Below, in pieces: positions 677 to 24,600 of a DNA stretch of 64,000 bases (position 1 is its first letter; each line of letters begins with the position of its first letter). The translations under genes were made by a program, and so were the position numbers. Origin of the DNA: Thalia democratica (Eukaryota). The notes beneath the pieces are model-generated. The model ran no database searches and had not been told where the DNA came from. It saw only the letters and a program-made list of their open reading frames with translations. Where the stretch lies: positions 31,434,001 to 31,498,000 of the forward strand of contig OZ241833.1 in NCBI GenBank assembly GCA_965202585.1. Direction: 5' to 3'.

Positions 677-3600
677 CTGTGTGACGTCATTAAAAAGTTT
701 GAAAAAACAAATTAGCGGTTCATATACGATTTGTTTTGACGTGATAAAGTTTTTTACACCTGTATGTTTTGTTTAACAGCATTTAAATGTATTAATTTAG
801 TTTTTGGTTTTGGTAGTTTTATTTTAATAACAATAACTTTTGTGTATACAACATGTGCATTGTGCATATTATATCACTTACGACTGGTGACAAAATAATT
901 AAAATATCGCTTGTTTTTTATTAAGATGTTAAATTTTACTTGAAAATACTATGGTAAACTAAACATTTGAAAACTTCGATTTGATCAAGAGTGAAAGTTA
1001 AACATATGGAAACATATGAAAATTCAGCATGTACTAGTAAAACAAATTGTGCTTAACTTGACTATCCTTTTTATTTTCAGCTAATCATACCTTCAACATA
1101 AAGTCGTTCCTGTTGACGCTGGATGTAACGACGTGCCAGTTTCCGTCCGATACCTCCACATCGCTGAACAGAGGAACAGGCTTGTCGACAATGTACCTGT
1201 GACGTAACAGAAGTTTTTCGTGACGTAACTATGCAGACGTGAGTTTTTAGTTTGATGTTGAAATATCAAGAAGTTTTTAAATGTTTGAGTCTTGATCTTT
1301 TGACAACTTGGTTGTCATAATTGTTTTGAAAAGGTCGCATTAACAGTCATGAATTAAAATTGTATATAATCCGGTTTAAAATATAAAACAGACTGACAAA
1401 AAAGTTTTGATGTAAGTTTGAGATGTCGTTAACATTTCATTGTTTTATTGTTTAAGTTTTAAAGAACAAAGTCATAAATAATAGAGTTGTTAGTTTAAAA
1501 TATGTCGTGAAATCTAAAAGAAGAATTTTTTTAAAATAAATGTTTACTCAGTTTACTTCACGGTAAGTTAAAAATTAAAAAAAAAGTCTGATGAATAAAG
1601 GCTTAGAATTTATCTTTTTACGTAAGCATATGTTTAGCTAGAAAAAAAAATACTTTAAAGTATTTAAAAATAAAACAACTGTGAAAATGCTTGATCTCAT
1701 TTTTTAAGCACTCGACTATAGAAAAAGGCAGAAGCCAGCATTAACAGTGATTGATTTTTCAACATATAAACTTTCTTACTTATCTTACATTTTACGTGCC
1801 TGAAAAAAAAAACTGGTTCTATGCTATTAGTTCAAAAAAACTACTGCGCAGTCATGTTAGTCTGAAAACACAACTTTTCAGACAACCCGATCGGCTTTCT
1901 CAAAACTCGATGCATTGTTCGTTAAAAAAAAATCAACTTTGCGGCAAGGCCTTAATCAAAGCTGCAAAATTTCGCACACCAGCAACGGCTAGCCATTATG
2001 ACGTAATGTTTCTTGTTTTTAATAAACGACGCCTTTGTTGCAGTTCAAAACAAAAGTTATGTTGTTTCGCGCTCGAGGATTAATATTAAAGCCATTGTGC
2101 GAGTGGGCTCACAGAAAAGTAATCTGTTTTTGATGAAAACTGCGTGCAGGTCTATATGGTCGAACAAGAGCAGTTTTGTTTAAAACTCAAAGTGTGGAGA
2201 GACAATAAGTCTTTTAAGCTGCGTCTAAATAAGGAACGGTTTTGTCAATGATGGAATGTATTTTGCTTTTTTTTTATAGTAGCTCCATTGAATGATATTT
2301 TTTGTGTTTACTTTGTATAAGGTGGGTTTATTTTCCCATTTTTTCAGTATTTGTGGTGAGAAATTTCTATCCTATTGGATAAAGTTTCAGCGAATTAGTA
2401 TGAATAGAAAAAATGTAAATTGTTTATGTAATAATTATTAGAAAAATAATTAAGAGTAAAGTTTTGCATTTTCTTGTTTATTGACTATTTTTGTTTATCA
2501 AGCTGTCTTTTTGTTTTGTAAGATTTCATTACAATTTTGAACTAAAGTATTTTATTAAATGGGTGTTTTGAGTAAAAATGGTTTATCATCGGTTTTAAAC
2601 TTAATTAAATAAGTAAATACCATTTTCGAAATAAAGATATATTAAATTAAGTTAAAAAATCTTTTTTTTTATATGTATTTGTTTGTTTGTATTTGTTTTT
2701 ATATTTAAACAAAAGTTATAGTGTTAAAGCTTAACAAAATTTAACAAAAATCTAAATTGACACAGAATTTCTAATTTATAATTTCTAATTTGAGACAGAA
2801 CTTTTAATTTAACTTTATTTTTAAAATGTATATACATATAAATCTTTTTACTGAGTACAAACATTTGTTTTAATATATACTTTTTAGATAGTTTTTTCAA
2901 GCCTGTTTTATTTTAAACTTTGCGTTGTCAATAATAGTTTACCTATATTTTGGTATCTACTAAAACAACAAAAAAATAACATTTAATGTTCAAATACAAG
3001 CTTTTTCAATTAATTGATAAGCAAAAAAATACTCAATTAATTAATAAAAATTTTTCAAGAATAAAAATAAAATTGTTATATACACATTTAATGTAAAATA
3101 TAAATTGACTTACTTGAATATAAAAACAAGATTCTTAAGTAAAAAAGTTTGTTTTTATAATTATCATAACTACTTAACTAAGTAAATTTTCTTTTTTTAA
3201 CTCAAAAGTATTTTCATATCAATTTATATGTAATTTAGATTTTACAAGATCATAAATCACAAGCAATATTTTACCTGCAGACAACTTGAAATCTAAAACT
3301 GATTAAACTTGTCTATTTTACATGCATATGAAAAATAAAATTAAGACTTAAAATAATAAAATGTAATTGAAATTTAACAGTTTACCAACAAACAATAAAA
3401 AAATACAATCAATTTTATCTATAGACAGCTTTCTAAAATCTAAAACTGGTTAAAAGTATTTTAGACTACATGCAGACAATAAAAGTTTTAAAACATAAAA
3501 TTAGTATACCAACATACAAAAAAAACAATTTTACCTGTAGACGACTCTTCCCTCCTCCACGGATATCGTTATGGAGGACTCCCCGTCGGTGAGGTGGAAG

Positions 3601-6600
3601 AGAAGGCCGTGGAGGTCGAAAGTCTTGAAGGCGAACTTCACTTTGATCTGTCTCATGTTCGGCACGCCGTCGTACAAGATGTACGAGCTGCCCCCGAACT
3701 GCGGGCTTGTCACCCTGACGGAACCTGCGTTTTCGTTTGATTTTTGTTGCTCGCAGTACGATTTTGTGTGTGAAAAGACAAAAAAATAATGATTTTTTAA
3801 GCGATTTTAATTTAATCGTAAATTTTTTTATGCATTTTAGCGTTTAATATTTTTAAATGCGTTAAAGACATTTGACAAAACTTTAAAGACTTTGTACAAA
3901 AATATTTTTGTAACAAAGGACGTAAAAAAATTTAGTTTATAAAAAAAACTTATATATACCTGTTTTAAATACTGAAATTAACTGAAGTTCGTTTTAAAAA
4001 GAAATCTTGTTATATTTACAATTTCAATTTTATCTTTTAAGTTGCAATCATTGTTCACAAACTTTTAACAGTTAAAAAATTGTGGTAGGTAAGAAATAAT
4101 ACTTATAAACGCAATCTATTAAGAAATAATAGTTAAAAATTAAAAAAAAAAAACTTAAAACAAGTCAAAGTGATCCTTAAATTCTAAAGCTAAAAATGTT
4201 TACAAGTACGAATACTTCAAAAAAGGATCACTTGTACTTTTTATTATAAATAATACTTTGTGTGTTAGTTGAAGTGTGTAACCCTACGAGACAATAAGCA
4301 TGTTATAAAAAATGTTATTCAGAAGTTAATTATAAAAACAACAAATTTAAAAGCATTACAAAAAACGTTTAAAAAATTTTATAATGTATTTTTCTTATTT
4401 CGTAGGAGATATTTCAACTAATAACTAATTAGATGTAATAAAAAAAGCACAAAATTTTAGTTGCAAAAGGTTTTTTTAAACTAATAATAATAAAAATTAA
4501 ATAAAAATCTCACCTTCTTCATAGGGTGGTTCCAGACCTGTAAAAATGAACAGATCTATTTAAATAAGAAATAAATGCATTTTCGTTTGTATATTAATAA
4601 AATTATTCAATATAGAATGAGTTGACTAAAACATGCGGTTAATGTAAAAACAAGCAACCTGCCCTGCATGCGAGTTAGTAGCGACGAAAACGGCTCTTTT
4701 TACAAGTTGGCACCAGAAAGATAATGCAGCAAATGTCCAGGCGCAATAATGTTAAATAAAACTGCACCTTGGTGATGAACTTAGCATTTGGATTTAGTTT
4801 TTTTTATATAAAAAAATTATGTACCTTTTCAGTAGAGTTTTTTAAACCATTTTGAACTGATTCAGTTTGTACTTTAATAAAAACTGTCTGAAATGTTTTA
4901 CTTTTTGTCAAGATTTCAGTTTAGATAAAAGTACATCTATAACTAAAAAAAAATTCTTTTAATCATTTTAGTACTGATAAGTTTTATTAGTTTTTGGTAT
5001 ATTTTAGTTTTTTACAACTACTTTATACAGTTGTTAATTTTGCTAATAGTTCTATAAAATAAAAACTGCTTTGTTTTCTATTGTTTATTAAAAGCAAATT
5101 AAAATAAAAAACACAATGAATGTTTATAATTTTTTTTTTAACCGGCAAATAAAAATTACTTTGGTAGTAAAGAAAAAAAAAGATATTTTCTAGCTAAATT
5201 TTCTACTTAGGATTATTCAAAAAATATTTCATGTTTAATTGATTTAAAACAAAAAGAATTGTAAAAAAATTTGAACTTGAAAACGTTAGTTTAGAAATGA
5301 GGTTTTAACTAAAAATAAAACATGCCATATTCACACCAGAAATAAAAATAAATCATGCAAAACGAACTGAATGAATAAAAAAACTATTTTAATTTAAGCA
5401 TTTTTGTTTAAAGATAGTTAAAGATTTAGTAAAAGTTTCTAATTCAGTAAAAGAAATTTCAAAAACATACTAAAGCTTTGAGTAAATAAACTAAGTTTTT
5501 AAAAGAGTAAAAAGTACTAGACAAAAACTTTTTCAGCAAAAAAATGTGTATTTTAAGACTTCATTATGAAAATTACTATAAACTAATATGTTTTAATTAA
5601 ATAAAAGGTTGAATTTGAGTAAAAATTTCAATGCTACATCATTAATAATTAAAATTTAATTAGTAAATAGTAAGGCAGCCATGACTTATTGAACTTATTA
5701 AGAAATGCTGAGGTTTAAACTTAGAATTTTTTTTTTGGTTGAAATAGTTAAAAACATTTTAATGTTAAGTTAACAACATTTAAAAAAAGTAAAAAGAAAA
5801 ACTTAAAAAAACATATAAAACATTTTATACCGATATTCTTTAATACTAGTAAAAAAATAAAATATCCAAACTTCGTAGAACTTGAAAAGTTGGAAATTAA
5901 TGAAGTAGTTTAGAACTATTTTTAATTTTGCTTTGAAATATCTAAGACAATGAATTTCTTATAAGCAGCTTTAAACCTAAATATGTTATTTTAAATTTTT
6001 ATATTATTACTTGCTTATAGAAAAATTTTAGATTTGGAATGGAGCAAAAACTTGATCGGAATTATAACTTTTTTTTGAACGTTTAAGTTTTTAATGCACT
6101 AAAATCAGAAAAATGTTAAATTTCATGACGACACGAAACAAAAAGTATGACTGCAAGTACAAAAACAAAATTATAAATTAAATTTATAAGTGAAAGATAC
6201 CGTTTGGTCGCAGACTCGCTTCTTTTTCTAAATAAATAAATATATCAATGCTTTAAAAGTTCAAAGTTTGAAAAGTTTAAAAAGTTCGAGAATTTAAAAT
6301 AACTATTTAATTAAATTAAATCAAATTTATTTAAAGATTATCCTGTAAGTTTGTGTTTTATATCTAATAATCTTTTAATTTGTTTTTTAAAAATAAGGAA
6401 AAAGAAAAGTGTCAGTGATGGTAAATGGACAAAAAATAAAAAAGTGATAGAGCAAAATGAGAGAACAAAAACGAGAGAATAAAATTGAGACAATGAAAAT
6501 GAGAGAGCTAGTGAAGTGTGGCGCTACCTGGTGTTCGGAACCGGTACTTTTCCGCGGGCCCGCCCCTCTGCAGGAAGTGGTTGGTCAGGTATTCCCCCAC

Positions 6601-9600
6601 TTCGGAACTGCTCACGTCATCATTCAAACTCAAGGAGAAATCCACTGAAACTTTTCTGCCGCTCGACGGCGCCCTGCTGAACTGGGTGACTCGCACGGAT
6701 CGTATCTTGCCGCTGAGCTCGGCCACTTCGGTGAGCTGGTTGTATATCTGGAAATTTAATTTGTTATGATTTCAGATAATTAAAAAAAATAATAATATTT
6801 TTTTACACAATTTTTACTGATTTCTAAAAGAAAATGTTTGCAATTAAATAAGTGTCTTTGTTTTTTAACCGTCCACACACATTGTTACAGATGAAAACCA
6901 CATTTGATAAGCTTATCTATTTTTTGAACAAAAAGCCAAAATTAGTTTACCTATGTGTATAAAGTAGCTAAAGTTGTTATTAGTTAAATAAGTTTTAGTG
7001 TTTGCAAGTAAAGGTTTTTTGCGTAATTTAGCTATAGATTACATATTTAAAATAAAAGTTGAGTTGAGTTTGTAAATTCTGTTGTAATTACAGTAAAAGA
7101 AGTGTAATTGTAAATTATGTTTTCGCTAAAAACTCAAACCAAAGACTATTTTTAGCTTAAAGTTGTTTGAAAAGGCAAACCAGTTTCATATTTTTCTATT
7201 GTATATTTTTGCATCCATTGCGTGACCTTAGCCTTATCTTTTGAGTTGCAAAAAGTGTTTTTTTAAAGTGTATACAAAAACAAATATCTGTCAAAAGCTA
7301 TGTTTTTGTCACATGCGATGCTAAAAGTATAATTAAAATTTTCCAACGAAAAAAGTACCGGGCAGCTCATAATTAAATTTCGTGTCATTCTAAAATGTCA
7401 AGATGAACTCACCTCATCCTCAAACTTCTTCTTGTATTTTTCGTGCTCCTTGGAGCCTTTTATTTTCAGTTTCGTTTTGTAAGCTTCGTGCTTGTCCAAC
7501 GACATGATCGCGCTTCCGTCGACCCGGTAAATTGCAGCGTCTGGTAAATGTTAGAAAGAATTTCGATAAAAATGAAACTGTCAGTAGAGCTATGACTTAT
7601 ATAGAATGGTATTTTTGAACAAAATCAAAAAATTGTTGCCACGTCTGCATTATAAATTTTTTTTTTCGACTTAAAATGTACAGTTAAACCTTTTCACACC
7701 GTAAATTGTCATATGGTAACACGGTTTTTTAAACAACAGTTAAAACATTTTTAGAAAAGACTTGGCAAAAAATTTATTAAAAAAACTCACTTATTTCTGA
7801 AGGTGGTTTTGAACCCTGTAAATAAAAAATAGATAAATGGTTTTAAAAGCAAGTAGTGTACTAAACGAAGCTCATATTTTTTAGTTTTAAAGTTAAATTT
7901 GTAAAATTCTATTATCTAATAGTACAAACAACTGTGTTACTCTGATAATATAACGTTTGCAATTCATGTCTAAATTTACTTTGCAGTTTAAAGTATTAAG
8001 AGCATATTTAAAGTAATATTTTGTATAAAAAACTTATTAGAAGTTTCTGCAAAGCAACTAATTTATAAGATATAAAAAATCAAATAAAGTTTTTGGAAAC
8101 ATTACAATATATTTTTAAATAAGTTTTATGACGTCATACCGGGTATCCCGAGCCTTCCTCATCATCGTCACCTTCATCGTCATCAGGTGGCATCGAACCG
8201 CTTCCGCTGCCTTCTGTGACGTCATATCGTTTATTTTTAGTAAAATATAATATACACAACTTTTATTAAAGATATTTTACACTACCTGTACTTTTATATA
8301 AGACAGACATTTGCTGTATTTTAAAAAGACACTTGTCTAATATGTGAATGTAAAAAAAACATGAGCTACGAAAAAATGCTAAAAGTTGCAAGCTTATTTT
8401 ATCTTTAAAAAATTCTAAACAGTAAAATGCTTCCAGCTTGATGGAACTGCAAAAGTAGTCTAGTTTTTTAAGAACAGCTTTAAATGACAAAATTTTCATT
8501 GAATTTAATAAAATTAAACCTGACAATTCGTCTTCATCGTCACTTTCAGACGGTGGAATTTCTTCCGAGGGTTCTGTTTATTAATTATAAAATAAATATA
8601 TTATAACTAGTATGAAGTAAAAATGGTAATTTAAAATATTCTTTATGAAATTTTGTGCTAACTTTCATACGTATGAAATGTTTTTGTAATTTTAATACTG
8701 TTTAGTTATGACACTATTGCTGTATTGAAATAAACCAATGTTATAAATTTTTAAGATGCAAAAACTTCACATTTATTCACATTTGTTCACACAAATATGA
8801 TTAGTTTTACGCATAGTATTTATTGTCGTTTGAGTATGCGTGAAGTATATGAACTAAATTTTGTAACATATAAGTATTTCTGTAAATTTAGTTTAAATAT
8901 TTTTCTAACAAAAACTTTGTAGTAAAAACTTAGCCAATAAAACTTTTAACATGACTTGAAATTATATGTATTAAATATTTTAGAATAACAATATAATTTT
9001 TGTGAAACTAAATGTTTACAGATAGTTATAATTACTTAAAATAAAACTTTACAAAGTTCAACAAAACTAGAAAATTTAAGACTGACCCTCGTAGAAACCG
9101 CACTTCCCACGCTTGTAAACGGTTACTACGTCATAATTTCCAATGACGTCACTACACGTCATCGCGTGCATCGCGCATTCGCTGTGGTAGTTGTTCCCGT
9201 CTGAACCGCATACCTTAAAAAGTAACAAAAAATTAGCAAGATTATTTGTATCATTTATATTTCGCCTTGAAAAATTTAAGGCAAAGGTAAGAAGTTTGAA
9301 CATTTGTACCATATTTTAATCATTTCAAGGTAACATTATTTTTTAGCATTTAACCTTTTCGAGCTTCATTACGAAATATATTCTAGACTAATAATAACGT
9401 TCACGTAAAAGCTAGGAAAAAAAAACTTAAAAATATCCAATAAAACTTACCAAGTCTTCCGGTTGGTCGTTGCAATCAGCCAATGTTATGCAAGAACAGA
9501 CGGCTCTCTGGTCAAATTGGTCGCCAACAACTCTGCATTTGTGGTCAGCCCTCTCACAAGTAACTCCCTTGCACAGTCCGTTATCTAAGAAAGTTCAAAA

Positions 9601-12600: not shown

Positions 12601-15600
12601 ATTTTAGATGACCCATAAAAATATTATATAACAATCGCTTTCAATCTGTTCGCCAAACTGTATCCATGATAAAGCTTTCTTTAATTTTTTAACAAGCTGC
12701 TTGAAACTTAAAGGCATCTTCGCGTCTAGTTTAAGATACATCAATTACCAACAAAAAAACTGGAACATAATACAACAACAAACAGGCGTTCTGACGTCAC
12801 TGCCGTTGTGACGTAATAGTTTGATTGAAAACTGCTAATGTTCTCCGTGAAAATTAATAAAAAGTCGCAGCTTAATTGAGCTCGGGTGGTCCGCTTGATT
12901 TATTGCTTGAAGATTTTTTGACTCATTGGCGCAAGTAAAACGAGTATCATTGGCGCAAAGCAAACACGCAAGTTTCCTACCGTTTGCTTGTTTTGTCACA
13001 AGAAAAAGCTTAATTTTGTTTGATTTTTACCCGACGTTTTATATAGTAACTACCTGTTTGGGTTAAAAGTTTTCAGTATTTTCGATAATAATTTAAAATA
13101 AGAGTAGTATGTAAATTCAATTAGGAGCTGATTGCAAAGTATAGTTTATGATTATTTTTTAAAAGAAGAACATCAATCGTTGTGGAAGTGACTGTTTAGT
13201 TCAGTTCATTAATCATTTTCGCAAGCTTTTGTATACGAACTTTTAAAACAAAAGTTCTTATTTAAACGAAAAGAAACATTGAAACTAACTTTTATCAGTG
13301 GAACATGATCCTTCATGCTTCAATGTGATGATCATGTTATTTTTGCAGGAACTTTTGTTTAACTCACAGATTGATTTGTAAGTGACTCCATCACTGCCAC
13401 ATAACTCTTTCTTCTCTCTGTTAAAGTAGTATAATTTTCCTAACAGTATGAATTTGTCTTGTTTTCTAATATTTAATTTATACGTGTTGTTTAAAATGTA
13501 ACGATTCATTTTAGTAATTATGCTTTAATCATAAGAAATTAGTAAATTTAGTACGAAGTTTTTTAAAAACTTAAACAAAATATAAAAATATAATTTCTAA
13601 GAAATATCACATAAAAGGTGAAAGTTATTGTAATATAAAAACTAAGCTTTTTAAACTGAAGGTAATAAATTATTGCTAGAAAACTTAAAACTTAAGAAAT
13701 GTTTGAAATAACCTTTGAAACATTTTAATTTAAAATAATACTATGATATTTTAAAAATAATTAAACATGTTTTACAAATTGAAATTACTTGAAGATCTAG
13801 CTAGACAAATGACTTCATTAGAAACAAATTATTCTGAATTTTTTTCATACAGTGTTTTAATTACAAATTTTAAGCATTTTTTAAACATTTAAAGTATTGA
13901 TTTATACTTATAAAATACCTTTGTTTGTCCTTAGTGACGGTTTATATTCAAACGTATAAAATCAAAAAAAACGACCTACAAATACATTTCAACTCAAAAA
14001 CTATGAAAAACTATTTTATCGTAAACATAGCCACACCAACATTAGTCATTGAATTTTAAGTATATAAATAAGTAGTAATTAAAGCATATTATAAAATTGT
14101 TAAACAGCTGCAGTTATTCAACTTACTCCAGTTCGCACTCGAAATCGCACACGCACCGATACTCGTTGTCCACAAACTCGCACTCCCCGTTCAAACACAG
14201 GTCCTCGTTATCGTAGCAGTCCAGTTCCCCGCTGCCCGAACCCGATTCTGATAAACAATTTGTTAACTAACTTATAATCATTAATAAATTTTATTTTGTT
14301 AATAATTTTTTTACCAAGAATAAACATGCTATCTTGGTATTGATACAAATATTGATGTTTAGGAAACACTTACAGCTCGATTCTGATAAGTAGTAATAAA
14401 CTGTTGATTGAAATTTAAACCACGATAGTATATAATAAAGCTAGAGTTAAATTATAAATAGGATTGTATATATGTTAAACTAAGAAAAGTAAATGTTTGA
14501 TAAAAATAATATTAAAATCAGGTAATAACTGAAACTTAAAAAATGTACCAAAGTTCATCTTCTGGACTTTAACTTATCGTTTATTGTGGCTGTGTTGAAA
14601 CAAAGCATGAATACTGTTTAAAAATTCAAACTAGTTGCGATAAGCTTCACTACAAAAACTTTCAACCGACCTTCGGTGGTGCAAGGTCCCTCGTAATTGA
14701 CAATGACTTCGGTGTTGTCCTCGCAGGCGACCTTCTTCAGTTGACACTCGTTCTTGTACGTCCTGTCGTCGGTACCACACACTTCAGCATCGTCCGATGT
14801 TTCCGGACACTGAAAAGTATTGTATCAGTAACATACTTTTTTTCTTCGAATGGTTAACTTTATTAGTTTTAGCTGAAGGCAGCATATTTTTACCATTTTC
14901 GGTTTATTAAGTGGAAAGAAAAGATAAAATTTCATTTTAAACATACTTCTGCAGTGAGAAGCAACCTCATAAATATTTTAAAGGCAGCAAAAGTTTGGTG
15001 TGGTAGAAATGTTGTATTACTACTTGTGTAGGTAAAAGCTTAAAGTAGTAACACAGAAGAAAGATACTTTAAAAAAAAAATAATTTGTTTTTGTGATTTT
15101 GTAAAAAAAAACTAGGAACAAAAAAAAAACTCGTATTGTATTGTATAATAATTTTCGACTATTTAGTTTTTAAAGTTAAGTTTGTGACAAATTCTATTCG
15201 AAAAACGACTTGAATACTAATAAAGTTAATAATAAAAATTGTTACATACAAGAATTATCACTTTGATAAATAGTTTCATTGGCGGATAATTGTCTAAGTA
15301 AAAGTATTAAAAAACTTAACTCTTAACTTAATATAACTTTATTATATATTTCTGTAACAGTCTGCCTGACTTTAACATTAATTTTTATATTTTACCTCAG
15401 GACATCTGCATTCTCTTCCGTCGAACTCGGAGTTGCGACATGTTCCGTAAATCGGGCACTTCATCCCTTCGCACGGATTTTCTGCAATTAAAACAACAGT
15501 AAAATTCCTTACTTGAAAAAAAATCCCACATTCACGCAAAAGCTGTTGTGATTACAAAGAATGTTTTCTTCGACCACACGCGACCAATAAGTTTTTAGTT

Positions 15601-18600
15601 TAAATATAAAAAAACTGACAAATACCATAGTTTTAAAGACACTCAGCGGTTTCTACAGTGTTATTTTAGTTTGTCAGACACTTGAAATAGTCTGGTAAAA
15701 CCAATGATTAAACATAGTGTTATTAAAGCTAATCTCTAAATACATACTCGAAACCGAATAATCTTCGTATTAGATCTTAAGTTTTAAGAAGCTAACAAAT
15801 ACTAAAACTTATCTTGATTTTTTTTTACTTTTAAGTTTGTTTAAAACACTAACTGCATGTTCCAGCCGATGAAACTTTTACATTTTTCTTGTTTTCACAG
15901 TTGTATTGCTCAAGTTTGCAGTTGCTCCTGTGAGTAAAAACACTGTTTAAACCTTAGTGCAGCATTTAAATTATACTATTAAATAAATTACTATTTAAAA
16001 AAAAAAGTTGTAGTAGATTTAAAAATTTCAAGTCGAAAACCAAAATTGTTTTTTAACTCTTAATTTTTTAGAGTTAATGGTACACACGTAAACGGACTGT
16101 TTACCACTTTATATCAAAAGAAGTTTACACTGAAACACCAATAAACGAACTTGTAAGTGTTTCCATCGCTGCCGCACACCGGTGCGTATTCGTCCTGGCA
16201 AGAAACACAAACACAGCTTGCTTTTCCGTCCTTCACAACGCATCCCTCACCTGGTTTGCTGCACATTCCATCGCAGGTACCTGTGTGAATGAAAATATTC
16301 AATAGTGTTACTTTTTTACAGGTTTTCACTCCCTATCGCAGTAACATGTGTTTAACAGTTAGGAGGTAAGCATTGCTTTTGCATAGGTTTTCAAAGTTAG
16401 TACCTCTTTAGGTTTTACTTTAGTACCTGACGAGAAAGTCTAATTTTGACTGATAAAATTATGGTAAAAAAAACTCGTGTTGGATTAGTTTGTTATACCG
16501 TTTTTCTATAACAAGTAGCACACAGCTAATTTAAGTTTAAACATATAAGAAATTTAGTGATATACAGAAAAAACTATTAAAGCATAAATGCAAAGTTGCT
16601 TCAACAAAAAGTACTATTTTTATCATCTCCTACCATGCGTTTAGTTTTCCAAACCTATTGAAATTAAAAGGTGTGCTGTGCTAATTGAGCATTAATATTG
16701 AGGAATTTTGTCTCCTTTTTATGAGCTTTAATCTCAGCATACGAACAACTGTATAAGAGTTCTTTTATACTATAATAGGAATTTTTTTCCTAATTCTGAA
16801 GAGTTGTTTGGATAGTGATAAATTTCTGTTTAAACTTTTTTATGGAATTAAGAACTTTTTTTTAAACCTTAACAGCTGATCTTTTCTTTTCGCAGCTTCT
16901 AATCCTAATTATTGCGTCATAGTTTACGTTTATCTTTGTGAGTAAATCGCGTAAATACGTCACAAAAACGCATGATCACGAGAAAAGTTTATAATTTTGA
17001 AGGCAAAAGAGTCTTAAATCTTTATAATTGCATACAACCTGAGTTACTAACTTTTAATTTTTTCGATTTGGATTACTTGGTCAGAGTTTTAAATTTTTGT
17101 GAAAAGGAAATATTTTAACAACAAGACTTAAGTATTCTTGACGATAAACATTTTAAGTTATTATAGAACTAATATAACCTTTACAAGCTTGTATTAATTA
17201 AAACAGAAACGTTTTTGTCAAGTTTTGTCAAAACAAAAAAAAAACTACTGTTTATGCATTTTACGTATCAGTTTGTACAAACATAAGGTGCGTTATCTGC
17301 GAACCTAACGCTCTAATAACTTGAAATTAACTCAAATTGGCGGCAATTTGGCTTTGAAACGCAATAATAGGCCGGCTTGTTTAGCAAATAGCAGATATCG
17401 TAATACTTTCATGCTTTATCCGGCCTAATCTCGAAATACACTAGTGCCTCGGATAAGCGACAAACTTTATCTGCTCTGTACATGATTTTCGGATTACGTA
17501 CGAGATCATTTCGTGGAAATATTTTTGCTTCTTCTGTAAGTCGTTTTTTTTTGTACGATTTTTTGATTTCAAATGAAAAAAAAAAGAGTTCTTTAAAATT
17601 GATGTAATATCTAAAAATATATAAAGCTGTATATATATTTAATGATTTCAATATTAAATAATTTCACTGCATATTACTTCAATTTATATTATAAAAGAAA
17701 CTATACTACACTTTGTCGATTATTTAAAACAATTTCAGTGCAAAAACAAAATTCAAAAATAATGTTTCAAACGAAAACCTAATAAGTATGTATTAAAAGG
17801 CTCAACTTTTTGTATAATAAGAAAATAATTGTGAAAAAAACCTTGGAAATTCTGGCACTTTGTCGCAAACACGAACTCCTCCGACCAGCAAACTTCCCTC
17901 CTCAGCGCCAGCTTGTTGGCGAAAGTGGCGTTTTCGCGTTTGGAACACAGGGGGGAGTACCGGACGTGATCCGGGTTGGGGATTGCGTCGCAGGTGCACG
18001 TGGGTATCAGCTCGCCCAAGTCCGTGACGAATATCTTGCACTTTGCCCCCTTTTCGCACCGAATGTCCAAACATATATCTGTTTAGGGGATTTTGGTTAA
18101 TTTTTCTTGAACGAGCTTTTTGTATTAGTTTATGATAAAGTTGATATTTTTTAATTTACATTTTGTGCATTTCGAATAGCTTAGAAGCTAAATATTTGAA
18201 TGAACTCTGTCTTTTTTCTGAAATAACTTTTTGATTTTATTTTTAGTGAAAAAAGTATAGCAAAAATATCTAAATATATATGTACCTTTTAAAATTTTCT
18301 TATTACTATTTTTTATTGAAACAGTCAGTAGATCTGGTTTCAAATTTAAGTTGTATTTTAAAAGCTAGTTATTTATTTAAGACAAAATAGCTAACTAAAC
18401 TACAAGTATAAGTATATAAATAAGTCTAAACAAGTCTAAAACTGCAATTTTGTTTTTTAAATTTTACAATTTCAATCATTATACCATCAGCAAAGAAGTT
18501 GTACAAGTTGGTTTCCATGTCAACCAGATTGACGCCAACTTGCCTAGCAACCATCGTCACCGCTCCGTTGTCAGGGTGGAACAGTCGTCGGTAGGCCCAC

Positions 18601-21600
18601 TTGTACTCGTCACCTGGCAACCAGTTTGTCGGCTCGTTTGAAGCTGAAACTTCCGCTCTGTGACGTCATAAACAAATTTTGTATAACTTCTTTTTTAGAT
18701 TTTTTAAATGCTTGTTTATTCCAAATATTACTTTTTCATATTTTTTATTTAAAGCTGGAGAGTAATTAATATTGTTATAAAGTTAATTTTTGAATTTTCT
18801 TTAGTCTAATATTTGGTCTATAACTTAAAATATATATTTCATACATGAATCCAAAAACAGACGATACAACTTTGGTTTTATGTTTTGTGACATTATGTAC
18901 AATACTGATATTTTAGTTTCGCTTTTAACAAATATATGTAGAATAAAACCAATAATTTATCAGAAGCCTACTTAAACTTTAACTTTGTACAAACTCAGTG
19001 AAATTTGTGGTTTTCACAGTCATTAATTTTAATCATTAGCGTTGTAGAGCTTACTATGATTACGTAAAAAAAATTAGTTTGTGTTTAGTGTTTAATTTAT
19101 GAGTAAAAAATTATTTCCTTTGAAGTTTTAACATTGCATGATTTATTATGGGAAGTAATAAACAAATATGATGTAAAAAGAACTTTTTCAACTTATACCT
19201 TTAATTGATCATTTTAAATTATACAATTATTAACAAAAAACCATACTTTACTTTATACAAACTAAAATATTGTTTTTGTAACTATTTCGTAATCAACTAA
19301 AAAAGTTTCTAAAAACCATTACGTTAAACATCTCATTATTTTTTGTAATTAAAAAAACACTAGTAAACTACATTGAAATAAAACAAACTTGTAAAAAATA
19401 ACCAAGCTTCCTTTCTGAACTTTTTCTATTTCAAATTTGATTATTTGGTTGTGTTTAGTGTTTTTCTCTGCAAGTTTCTGTAAAATATTATTTTCTTTAA
19501 ACTTTTTATTTAAAGAAACATCCGCTGTATTCATAACCTCTAAATAAACACGACTTAAACTTTTAACATTTTTTAATCGAAATAAACTGTTAATAGAGTT
19601 AATGAAGTCGAAAGTTAATCTGAGGCTTGAACGTGATCTATCGAAACTTGTGAATAAAAATACGTCAGACAAAATGTAAAAGATTAACCAGTTATCGATC
19701 TCGAAATTATGTTTAGAAAACACGAAAAGGTCTCCATTGAGTTGAAATTAATCGGAAAGCAACAAATTTGTTGGTCTCTGTAGAACAGCGAGCTGCGATA
19801 TGAAACGCGGATTTCAGTCGAGTTGTCAACGTAGCCGATAAGTCGCTTTTGAACGCTTATCTTGTTACTTTGCAGCTAAGCAACGGGAGTAATCTGGTGA
19901 AAGTGACGCCTTCGACGATAAGAAAAACGCGAAAAGGGCCAGTTTGATGAGCTTTTGCTGCTTGTGCAACAAATATCCACTGACTTGTGGAGTAATTGCT
20001 GGTGAAATATAAACTCACGTTTCTTACAGGATTAGTTTACATACACTGTTCTGACGTTTTGATGCAGTTTGTTCTGACATTCAAAGTTCAACAAACAATT
20101 TTAAGAAAATAGGATTATCTTTTTAAATAACGTCGATGCAGATTTTAATCAGTTGTAATAAATATAACTTAAATCCTGAAAAAGTTCGCCGATGTGCTTT
20201 TAATAACATTTAATCTTTGTTAAACTGGGATTTTTTCATGAGAAGAAAAGATAAGCATTCAACATTTAATCTTATCACACAACTATATGGTATGAATTTA
20301 TACAAACATATTTTAAAATGACAACTAAAGTTATTTTAGCTGAGTAATTAATCTACATTAATCCGTGTTTAATAAAACTAATGTCATTTTCGCTAGTAGA
20401 ACTAGTGTATTATATGCTTTAATCAAATAAATCATCTTAAAAACTTTGTAGAACTGTAAATCCGTTATAATGGGGGAAGTTCAATATTTTAATTTGTTTT
20501 AAAAAATTAAAAATAATTAGTTTTTAGCGTAAAAGTTTAACTGATAACGTTCAGCATAACAAGATTTTTAAGCAAAGATAAAACTACTGTGTAACCCAAC
20601 AACATGAGTATTCAATTAATCGACTATAAAACACGATAATCTATATTTAGCCTCTGCAAAGCTCAAATTAAACAGAGGATAAAAGATTGATTGTGATGAA
20701 GAAATTTCTGAGCTTTTGTTTGAAATACACCAAGGTTAACAAAAACCACCAAGTGCATTAAGGTAGTCGGCTGCAAATCGCGAAAGACCACAAGTATTTT
20801 CAATAAGACAGTTTTGTTGAAATAAAAATTTGTTTAAGCAATAAATTCCGATCTCATTAGTGGTGTTTGGCGTGAGTTTTAATTACACAAACTTCGGTGG
20901 TGTTTATTTTTTCGTAGGTTTGTGCTGCGTTGCAGTAAAATTTAATAATTGTTTGTTTCAGTGTTAACAACACAAAGTGCGCACTTTTTAATTTAATTTT
21001 GACGTTAAAAGTAAAGTTTATTTAATCAACTAAAAACTTTTTGTTTACATATTAGCTTTGGTGAATATTGGTGGTTAAAGTGTTTACACTTTCAGCGAGT
21101 ATTATACTTTGATTTGAAAAATAGTTTTCTAAAATTTTTATAAAGCTATATATATTGAGTTTGCATTAAACAATTTTGAAAAGTATAACTGTTAGGATAC
21201 TTGGTTTAATTGACGTTAACTTACTTAACTAAACAAACTTTTAAAGTTTTTATTAACTTACATTGACACACTAAACGTTTAGTGTCTGCAAAAATATTTG
21301 AAGCTCAAATGTTTGTTTAAAGATTAACAAAATTCAAAGGCTTGATACTCTTCTTATTTGTGTGCGTCTGCCGCGCAACCATGCCCTCAACACAGCCTTC
21401 ACTAAACTTTTGCCAAAATTAATGAGCTTAGCGGGGCATTACCTTCAAAACTGTTTACCTTCGCAGTCAGAAAGTCTTGAGCATCAACAACTTGTTTTGT
21501 TTACAAACAAATGTTTGTTTTATTTGGGGTGGAAATGACATTTAGAACGTTTTGGCAGTGTTTATGTTCTTTTCAAGTTCCGCTTACTTTTTTTGCAACA

Positions 21601-24600
21601 GTATTTGAAAACTAATCTTATATCTGATCAAAGCTTTTTTTACTCAATTATATGCAAACTAACCAAGTTGATGAACTTTTCGATTCTTTTCAGAGTTCTT
21701 TTGAACTCTTTAGAATCCAAATTACAGTTGCCCGCTGTATTTTTGCACGCCTTATCGGCATCGACACTGAAAGTTCCGTGTATCAAAGTTGTATCTGTAT
21801 TTAATATTTTTTTTTTTTTTGAAAAAGTATAAACTTTTAAAGCTCAGTTGAACACAATATAGTTTAAAATAAATACGAAATTTGTTCAAATTTCATGTTT
21901 GAGATTTTTAAGTTATTAATCTGTAGAAATTTGGTATTGTTTAAGTCTCATATAAAGGTTTTATAGAAAATTTTCACTAAGAAAAAGCTATTATCTTTTG
22001 TTACCTTTTTAAACTAAACAAGCACCTGTATGAAAAACCATTTAAAAACGTAAAACAATACAGCACGTAAATAATCAATAAAAAACAAAAGTCTATATCT
22101 GAAAAAAAATAATGATTACTTAACTTTTCCTGAAACACGTTGAAGATATTTTTTACAAGGTTACGTGTATTCGGTTATAAAAAAAAAGATTATGTAGTTT
22201 TTTTATTCAATCTATAAATAAACTCTAGCTTTTAGTACTTAACAACCGTATTAATCAGTATATAAAAAAAACAGTTAATATGTGCAAATGAATACATAAT
22301 TAAAACATTTTTTATAAAATAAAATTTTATAGCAACAAAATTAAAAAAACTAAATACAATGAAACTTACCAAAATCGCTTTTGCAGGCTTCTTTGGACAC
22401 CGCTTTGAGCTCCTGACCAGTTTGGCAAGCATACCTGAGAATATAACACAAAAATAAATAACAAGTAAGTTATAAGGTATTTGAAAAGGTGTTCTGAACT
22501 TTAAAAACAATCTAAATGCTTAGAAGTGTAAATGAATATAAAAGTATACTAAAACTTAAAAGTTCTAGCAGACAGATAAAACTATCTGTAAATACAAAAC
22601 TTTGCGTTAAGATTAACCAAACGCAGGTTGAACAAAAAATGCTTACATTGGCACACATAAATTTTTGGCTTAAAAAACTTGAATTAATTAAAGCTACCAG
22701 TATAGCCGATAGACTTGGAAAAAGTCTTAGCGGATTATTTTAAGGGCAGCAAAATTGATTTTTGCTTATGAAGCTTAAAGTAGTTTATTCCGCGGCTTTG
22801 ATCTTTATCCCGTAAACTCCTCACCCTAGGTTAAAACTTAAATTTTTTTATAGATTTAGAAATAAGTTTTGATCTTTTACTTTCAAAGTTGCCCAGCTGT
22901 GCTTGATTAAGGCTGCTTTGTAGCGTAGGCGTATAATACAGAAAATTAAGTTATTAAAATAAGACTTAAAACTTCTTTTACATATTGAATTTAATTTATT
23001 CTTTTTTACAAATTAGTTTGTTTGATATTAGTCAAATTTTTTATCTTTAGGTTTTATAACGCAAGGTTTTAATTTATATTTACTAAATGTCCTTGTCCAA
23101 ATCAATTATTGTATTTAAAAAGTAATATTGCAAAAATTAGAAACATTTATTTTATTTTGATTAAATTTTACAGTTTTATTTGAGCCTCTACCAATATTAA
23201 AAAACAGTTCAATGAGTTATTTTCTTTTGTTGAAAATATAAATTAACTTGCGAAATAACTGTACAAGTTTTTATAGTATTTAGTGCAAACAATTGACAAT
23301 GGCTATTTTTAGGAATGCACTTTCAGTTTAATCCCTTTTCTGTTATTTTAACTTGTTGTCAGTTCTTTTGTTGGTTTTTAAACCTTTTGTACTCAATACA
23401 ATTAGCATTCATCGTTTATATTTAAACTCACCTTTTTTGTAAACTTTTAAAAACTTAAGGAATGTATGGTGTAACTTTAAAATAATTTCTAAGCTTTTTA
23501 AAACAATTTCTAACTGGTTAAAAATAAAAAAAACAACTTTATAAATACAAAAAATACTCATTTAGAAGCGAGGTATTAACATGGAAATCAATAAACTTAA
23601 CAATACATAAAGGACTACAAATTACTTAAAGTTGTTTTATTAATATAATCCTTAAAATAGCTAAATAAACATAAAAAAGAGTAATCAATTTAACTCTACC
23701 TCTAAAGTTGATTCAGCTCTAGTTGAATTAAAAAAATTTTTTAAAAAATGTTCAAAACAAACTTTCGCATTGCGCATTCTGACTGGTAGCTCCTTCCGTC
23801 GTTGCCGCAAACCGTCTTAGTGACATCATAGTCGCAAACGATGTCGCTGCAGCAAGTTGGAGAACCCCTCGCGTCGAAACTGCAGGCTCCGGGGCAGGTC
23901 GGCACGAATCGATTGAGAGACGAGTTGTAGGAAGTGCATGGGTCTGAAAAAAATTAAATAATTCACTAAAATTAGCAACTGTAAGTTAACGGATTTTTTA
24001 TAATGTACAAGCTTTCAAACTCTAAGTTTATGAAACTAATAATGTGTGTTAATTGTAACTTCTGTATACTTTTATTTAACAAAGGTTTTCGGTTTAACCG
24101 CCTAATACTGCTACAAATTTTTATTGATAAATAAATATTAGAAAAATTAAATATTTTGCTGTATAACAGCTGCAACATCCGTATATATACTGCTTAACTT
24201 CCAGGAACAAACAGTTGTTTGTTACCTCAAGAGGTTTTTATTTGTCCTGTTTGCCGAGCATAAACGGGTTAAAATTTGGTAATTCTCAGAAATTTTATGC
24301 ATGTTGCTTTAGATGTGGCAGCTTAGAAAAGTAAGCCGGTCGCAGTTAATCAGCAGCGTGTAGTTTTCTTAATTGGAAATTAAGCTAATCAAGTTGTACA
24401 TGTCAAAAATTCGTTCTTAATCTAATTTTTTCATGATGTTGTTAATGAGTTTTTTGATACAAAATTTAACTAGCCACAGGAGTTTGTATAAACCTTTTTG
24501 TGTAGAAAACAGCTAAAGGAGTAAATTTTAACAGTCATACTTTTTTATTTAAATACTTCAATTAGCTTTTCATTAGTTAAAGACTCTTTTGTGCTTGTAG

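Follow-up and report, generated by a model that had tools for sequence, protein, structure and literature searches.

From sea urchin to human, agrin is regarded as keeping one domain plan, except for the number of follistatin (FS) repeats. Its canonical SEA domain is located after the last follistatin domain and an acidic/Ser-Gly region, in vertebrates, in Ciona and in the gene described here. SEA domains (PF01390) occur in agrin, perlecan, enteropeptidase, MUC1 and MUC16; they are extracellular, cysteine-poor, about 120-130 residues long and bordered by phase 1 introns on both sides. Their first strand, around G-[ST]-[FV]-S-[VI], is hydrophobic; they carry S-x-E-F at the start of a long amphipathic helix, and continue with a strand-turn-strand that bears G-S and hydrophobic residues. 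For the agrin of Ciona intestinalis (XP_002123658.1), the published final architecture comprises seven FS domains and one SEA (PMC2874008), and residues 431-677 are given as a 'region unassigned by Pfam' (PMC2874008 Table S1). In sea urchin and insect agrins, the Kazal domains follow each other back-to-back, with no gap at the corresponding site (PMC2874008 Table S1).

The window, a stretch of 64,000 nucleotides from Thalia democratica, carries on its minus strand a gene that is identified as agrin by its matches to Pfam NtA, Kazal and laminin-EGF families. Successive minus-strand exons match NtA (E = 9.6e-5), several Kazal domains, EGF_laminin twice, and Kazal again. A laminin-G-like exon at 3534-3806 was assigned by eye and has no Pfam match. 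The resulting order is that of agrin, with NtA, a follistatin/Kazal array, two laminin-EGF domains, a further FS, SEA and laminin-G, and the gene is collinear with Ciona agrin. FS3 is encoded by two minus-strand exons. The first (23763-23943) covers the Kazal part up to E-C-A-M-R-K (Pfam Kazal_2, E = 6.4e-6), and the second (FS3b, 22370-22434) provides the last two cysteines and ends in phase 1. FS4 (17842-18078, minus strand) is a divergent follistatin-like exon with phase 1 at both ends; it lacks the CGSDG motif and is not detected by Pfam, and it is also retained in the three homologues described below. The canonical SEA is encoded by two exons on the same strand, at 7413-7540 (42 codons, phase 1 in and phase 0 out) and 6528-6747 (73 codons, phase 0 in and phase 1 out).

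Three additional minus-strand exons lie between FS3b and FS4, the former joining the first of them. A preliminary description of this DNA had proposed that they encode an extra module of about 130 residues in addition to the canonical SEA, with phase 1 at both ends. The analysis confirms that they form a real, conserved protein module of this size, and the proposed position, exon borders and phases all hold. Exon 1 (21664-21794; 2 nt plus 43 codons, phase 1 in and phase 0 out) codes for the first predicted strand, then for a short C-x(n)-C loop, and reaches into helix 1, which opens with S-K-E-F. Exon 2 (19389-19477; 29 codons plus 2 nt, phase 0 in and phase 2 out) codes for the end of helix 1 and a predicted strand-turn-strand containing K-G-S-L-V-I-F. 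Exon 3 (18485-18657; 1 nt, 57 codons and 1 nt, phase 2 in and phase 1 out) is the most conserved part of the module, with the motifs W-A-Y-x-R-L and D-N-G-A-V-x-x-V-A-R. Each of the three exons begins after a pyrimidine tract and an AG acceptor and is followed by a GT donor. Spliced together they measure 393 nt, with successive phases 1, 0, 2 and 1, and encode an uninterrupted peptide of 130 residues in which the motifs LIHGTFSV, DSKEF and KVQKGSLVIFY singled out in the preliminary description are all present. The phases at the FS3b and FS4 junctions agree with this arrangement. FS3b leaves one spare base at its 3' end and FS4 begins with two, so that including or omitting the module leaves the reading frame unchanged.

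The module is present in three other agrin sequences. Another agrin gene of this genome (hereafter the paralogue, on contig C5) and L002, an unrelated contig from a relative with a compact genome, each carry it as three exons between FS3 and FS4 with identical phases; in L002 the introns measure only about 55-62 nt and interrupt it at the same positions. In Ciona agrin the motifs and their order recur immediately behind FS3, in the first ~135 residues of the 431-677 region, which bears these motifs but has had no earlier description as a domain. Every residue that is invariant in the alignment is kept in Ciona except one, the second Thr of an N-terminal T-T; those retained are the G of R-G-S, A-D, K-E-F, D-F-x-I, E-V, G-S, W, R-L, N-G-A, V-A-R and D-F. 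The length of the module among the homologues ranges from 117 to 132 residues. Comparison of the window copy with the paralogue gives dN 0.47 and dS 1.45, hence a dN/dS of about 0.3, and judged by these rates the module is under purifying selection.

A search of the 802-Mb genome found the module in the two agrin genes and nowhere else. Exon 3 is also found on TARA plankton scaffolds. An exhaustive representative search with this exon yielded only three real clusters, all of them exon-sized ORF fragments, and a word-indexed search with the exon-3 profile found no further relatives. Exon 3 also matched P0003 and P0004, but these two are proteins of repetitive sequence and the matches were discarded as spurious. 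Since the sea urchin and insect proteins have no gap at the corresponding site, the module looks tunicate-specific and absent from the agrins of other animals.

The features of SEA domains listed above recur in the module: size, extracellular location, scarcity of cysteines, intron phases, a predicted hydrophobic first strand, S-x-E-F at the helix start, and a predicted strand-turn-strand with G-S and hydrophobic residues. A crude propensity-based assignment of secondary structure gives b-a-b-b-a-b. The first exon of the module and that of the canonical SEA from the same gene have the same phases, and both domains carry S-K-E at the helix start. The first intron is in phase 0 in both, after 43 codons in the module and 42 in the canonical SEA. 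We used hhalign to compare a three-species alignment of the module with two canonical agrin SEAs and one Pfam-verified SEA exon. The N-terminal half aligns with a score of 25.5 (P = 0.0011, probability 21%), module positions 4-62 being placed on SEA positions 6-64, and in this register the two first introns are three residues apart. Neither 100 column shuffles nor 120 local-block shuffles produced a score this high, and reversed controls gave 13.8 and 14.3. Identity between module and canonical SEA is about 20-25% over 36-59 aligned columns.

The module also differs from known SEA domains. It is encoded by three exons and the canonical SEA by two. Its C-terminal 57 residues are longer and cannot be aligned with SEA; the similarity of this half is not significant, as 8 of 100 shuffles reach its score. 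The C-x(n)-C loop that follows the predicted first strand, and is missing in the paralogue, is not a SEA feature. The module adjoins FS3 and FS4 directly, within the follistatin array, and not the O-glycosylated, Ser/Thr-rich stretches that are the usual context of SEA domains. The Pfam SEA profile gives no match at E <= 10 to the single exon pieces of the window copy, the paralogue or L002, a weak negative since the canonical SEA exon pieces of the same gene are missed as well. Run over the six-frame translated genome, this profile detects only one SEA exon, the unrelated L005, which scores 27.8 bits when scanned as a piece. With Pfam 23 on the whole Ciona protein, one SEA was assigned and none in the module region at E < 0.01 (PMC2874008). 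Sequence searches of the PDB with the exon-1 and exon-3 profiles and with a canonical SEA exon returned chance matches only (E > 0.8), and a feature-based search of the ESM Atlas with exon 3 gave no usable match.

The module may be a lineage-specific globular domain whose fold is unrelated to SEA, for example a mixed α/β domain with a helical C-terminal half, in which case the resemblance to SEA would not go beyond a strand and the amphipathic helix after it. The absence of matches in Pfam, the PDB sequences and the ESM Atlas, the C-terminal half that cannot be aligned and the low hhalign probability all favor this reading. The AlphaFold2 model of the exon-3 fragment alone points the same way, as it consists of three helices (residues 17-26, 32-40 and 50-56 of exon 3) instead of a helix plus a strand. 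However, the model is of low confidence (pLDDT 59.7), and strands without their partners are often mis-modelled. A complex prediction with the three exon products as separate chains scored 0.01 against a mark of 0.34, with alignments unused and one chain shorter than 30 residues, and speaks for neither reading. An unrelated fold also has to account for the in-register N-terminal similarity that exceeds all 220 shuffles, for the phase and near-position of the first intron common to both domains, and for G-S and hydrophobic residues where SEA has its turn. We regard it as possible but doubtful. The SEA-likeness put forward in the preliminary description is plausible and has moderate support, which comes from the N-terminal half, the first intron and the predicted strand and helix order, and does not extend to the C-terminal half or to a Pfam match.

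In SEA domains of the MUC1 type, which have a motif of the form G|S-[VI]-V-V at the turn between strands 2 and 3, the two halves stay bound to each other after cleavage, and cleavage needs strain in the fold, so that the motif alone is not predictive. The module carries G-S at the turn between predicted strands 2 and 3 in three of the four homologues, followed each time by hydrophobic residues (K-G-S-L-V-I in the window copy, T-G-S-S-V-L in L002 and Q-G-S-A-I-L in Ciona), whereas the canonical SEA of the same proteins has no such motif (S-S-G-R-K-V-S-V in this gene). If it were cut autoproteolytically at G|S, the module would join the laminin-binding NtA-FS1-3 part to the remaining agrin in a force-sensitive manner. 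We hold this to be rather unlikely: the paralogue has D-K-T (in D-K-T-V-F) in place of G-S, which means that the function for which the module is conserved must be independent of cleavage, and the SEA fold of the module is itself conjectural. The presence of a candidate site as first described is borne out in three copies, but the suggested release of NtA-FS1-3 is not, because halves that remain associated would not be freed by cleavage alone. It is quite unlikely, too, that a second, self-cleaving SEA turns tunicate agrin into a two-chain protein with a force-sensitive joint between NtA-FS1-3, its laminin-anchored part, and its receptor-binding remainder; one paralogue would then have lost the motif after the gene was duplicated, and the two genes would form a natural pair of cleavable and non-cleavable agrins.

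The symmetric phases would also permit the three exons to be skipped together, as the preliminary description had noted, and the FS3b-FS4 join indeed stays in frame; agrin would then exist with the module or, in certain tissues, lacking it. An alternatively spliced cassette nevertheless appears improbable, since the follistatin modules that were checked (FS3 and FS4) are phase 1-1 as well, which makes the symmetry uninformative, and since none of the four homologues has lost the module, not even the one with a minimal-intron genome. Apparent joints in three sequence runs are not splice junctions; these runs are genomic contigs, and the joints have sides of 20-27 nt and lie at repeats. Finally, that the exons are chance open frames in introns, wrongly joined in the preliminary description, is hardly credible, as it is contradicted by the conservation of the module, with identical phases in the paralogue and L002, a counterpart in Ciona, a low dN/dS and neither stop nor frameshift.

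We consider it probable, by a modest measure, that the module is a constitutive extracellular domain that was inserted in the tunicate lineage and kept under selection, a divergent SEA-like domain that serves as a compact spacer. The point of insertion would be the phase-1 intron that separates follistatin-like domains three and four, and purifying selection would have maintained the module in both agrin paralogues, L002 and Ciona. We infer that its fold is most likely a divergent SEA-like α/β domain with the order strand, helix, strand-turn-strand, helix, strand. It may derive from the canonical SEA of the gene itself through exon duplication and shuffling. It is probably a compact, cysteine-poor globular spacer amid the disulphide-rich follistatin array. 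In the copies with G-S, autocatalytic cleavage into two non-covalently bound chains might occur.

This conserved addition amid the follistatin repeats is a change specific to one lineage, found in the invertebrates most closely related to vertebrates. The Ciona sequence of this module has been public since 2010 and was left as an unassigned region, and Ciona agrin is now a model for neuromuscular junction development (PMC12445529). Should the module prove to be a SEA whose G|S site is active, the N-terminal half of agrin, about whose function little is understood, would acquire a further processing step and a mechanically weak spot. A module without a SEA fold would represent an undescribed extracellular domain.

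The module comprises three minus-strand exons, at 21794-21664 (exon 1), 19477-19389 (exon 2) and 18657-18485 (exon 3), each preceded by a pyrimidine tract and an AG and followed by a GT. Once spliced, these exons give 393 nt with a single open frame of 130 residues, which contains the LIHGTFSV, DSKEF and KVQKGSLVIFY strings, in agreement with the preliminary description of the locus. The successive intron phases are 1, 0, 2 and 1. The phases of the flanking exons confirm that the module has phase 1 at both ends and lies between the follistatin-like domains FS3 and FS4. FS3 is encoded on the minus strand by two exons (23943-23763 and 22434-22370), the second of which ends with one spare base, and the first two bases of FS4 (18078-17842, minus strand) finish a codon, so that the frame is unbroken with or without the module. 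Further minus-strand exons of the window match the Pfam NtA (N-terminal agrin), Kazal (several) and laminin-EGF (two) domains, which identifies the gene as agrin. The canonical agrin SEA is encoded far downstream by two minus-strand exons, at 7540-7413 and 6747-6528 (phases 1-0 and 0-1), and the module is thus truly additional, as had been proposed. Acidic stretches with Ser-Gly repeats (G-S-G-S-G-S beside D/E runs) are also present on the minus strand at 8137-8262 and 14126-14266. These resemble glycosaminoglycan attachment sites, which a heparan-sulphate proteoglycan would be expected to have.

The module is a real coding feature. An exhaustive search with exon 3 revealed three clusters of exon-sized ORF fragments (96%, 65% and 44% identity), two from TARA Oceans plankton metagenomes and one from a 4-kb Logan contig, L002, whose source genome has tiny introns. 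Within 900 nt, L002 encodes FS3, three counterparts of exons 1-3 and FS4, and the two internal module introns (62 and 55 nt) have phases identical to those of the window copy. Over L002:668-3753, where introns are about 55-62 nt, both module intron positions are kept but FS3 is a single exon. This compact tunicate genome would be a handy source for cloning the region. The 802 Mb genome of the window contains exactly one further copy of exon 3, on contig C5, in a second, complete-looking agrin gene (G000:C5:72337300-72355500, plus strand; loci L004, L006-L008, L010 and L011) that comprises FS1 to FS4, canonical SEA exons of its own and, between FS3 and FS4, a module of three exons with identical phases. 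The conserved exons of this paralogue are about 60% identical to those of the window copy, with a dN of 0.47 and a dS of 1.45 for the module, and neither stops nor frameshifts were found in the module of any copy. TARA scaffold L001 carries the orthologue of the C5 paralogue from a related plankton species. At window position 18622, sequencing runs X1 and X2 have a C>A change that replaces Trp by Leu ahead of L-P-G-D, where L002 has Tyr; the protein P0001, from TARA-derived contigs L014-L016, begins at the resulting TTG. As for the suggestion that the three exons could be skipped together as a cassette, the phases would permit it, but every FS module checked is likewise phase 1-1 and the module is kept even in the minimal-intron genome of L002. 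The three sequencing runs found to cover the locus consist of genomic contigs from the same or a sister organism, and none is an RNA run.

Pfam gave no SEA or other relevant match on the separate exon pieces of the window copy, the paralogue or L002. This negative is weak, since the two canonical SEA exons, each taken alone, were also missed, whereas an unrelated SEA exon of the same genome (L005) passed the cut-off. We compared profiles with hhalign, taking the three-species module alignment as query. Against the two canonical agrin SEAs the score was 18.3 (P = 0.023), reached by 1 of 100 column shuffles; adding the Pfam-verified L005 SEA raised it to 25.5 (P = 0.0011), above all 100 column shuffles (maximum 22.9), all 120 block shuffles (12 columns per block; maximum 19.9) and the reversed controls (13.8 and 14.3). 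The HHalign probability was just 21%, owing to the shallow alignments. Module residues 4-62 align with SEA residues 6-64, an in-register stretch that runs from the first strand through the S-x-E-F helix to the second strand. Exon 1 and the first canonical SEA exon have the same phases, 1 at the start and 0 at the end (43 versus 42 codons), and in this register their introns lie three residues apart, which is compatible with, but no proof of, an origin by duplication of SEA exons. Crude analysis of propensities and hydrophobic moments, only roughly correct when applied to the canonical SEA, predicts for the module the order strand, helix, strand, strand, helix, strand. Similarity between the C-terminal halves was not significant, their score being matched by 8 of 100 shuffles. 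The AlphaFold2 model of exon 3 alone has three helices, which would be unlike the expected SEA C-terminal half, at a pLDDT (59.7) too weak to count. The SEA-like reading thus has partial support, from the N-terminal profile match, the intron phase and the predicted order of strands and helices, and none from the C-terminal half or Pfam on the pieces; on balance, we lean slightly towards a SEA-like fold.

The predicted turn reads K-G-S-L-V-I in the window copy, T-G-S-S-V-L in L002 and Q-G-S-A-I-L in Ciona. The canonical SEA of these agrins is devoid of a G-S-hydrophobic motif, so that the extra module preserves it better than the canonical domain does, a suggestive contrast. The paralogue has D-K-T-V-F instead, so that a function common to all copies cannot rest on the motif. 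In MUC1-type SEA domains, cleavage requires strain in the fold, and the resulting halves remain tightly bound to each other. The proposed release of an NtA-FS1-3 portion is thus better read as a non-covalent, force-sensitive joint, and actual cleavage at G-S is unlikely.

The survey extends beyond the paralogue and L002 to Ciona intestinalis. Its published corrected agrin sequence harbors the module motifs in the same order, directly behind the third Kazal domain (PMC2874008, Table S1), and retains all residues invariant in the alignments of exons 1, 2 and 3 (A1-A3) except the second N-terminal Thr. That study reported only one SEA and left residues 431-677 "unassigned by Pfam" (PMC2874008); the module sat unrecognised in this public sequence. 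The agrin gene of the window is collinear with Ciona agrin, which fits a tunicate origin. FS4 (window 17842-18078, minus strand) is a divergent follistatin-like domain that is devoid of the CGSDG motif, yet is kept in the paralogue, L002 and Ciona. Its exon gave no Pfam Kazal match, and this divergence explains why Ciona agrin was counted with only seven FS domains. At the place of the module, the tabulated sea urchin and insect agrins have back-to-back Kazal domains (PMC2874008, Table S1). Thus, the module is conserved in tunicate agrin and missing from the non-tunicate agrins tabulated in PMC2874008, and Thalia democratica agrin carries a lineage-specific, probably SEA-derived module within its follistatin array.
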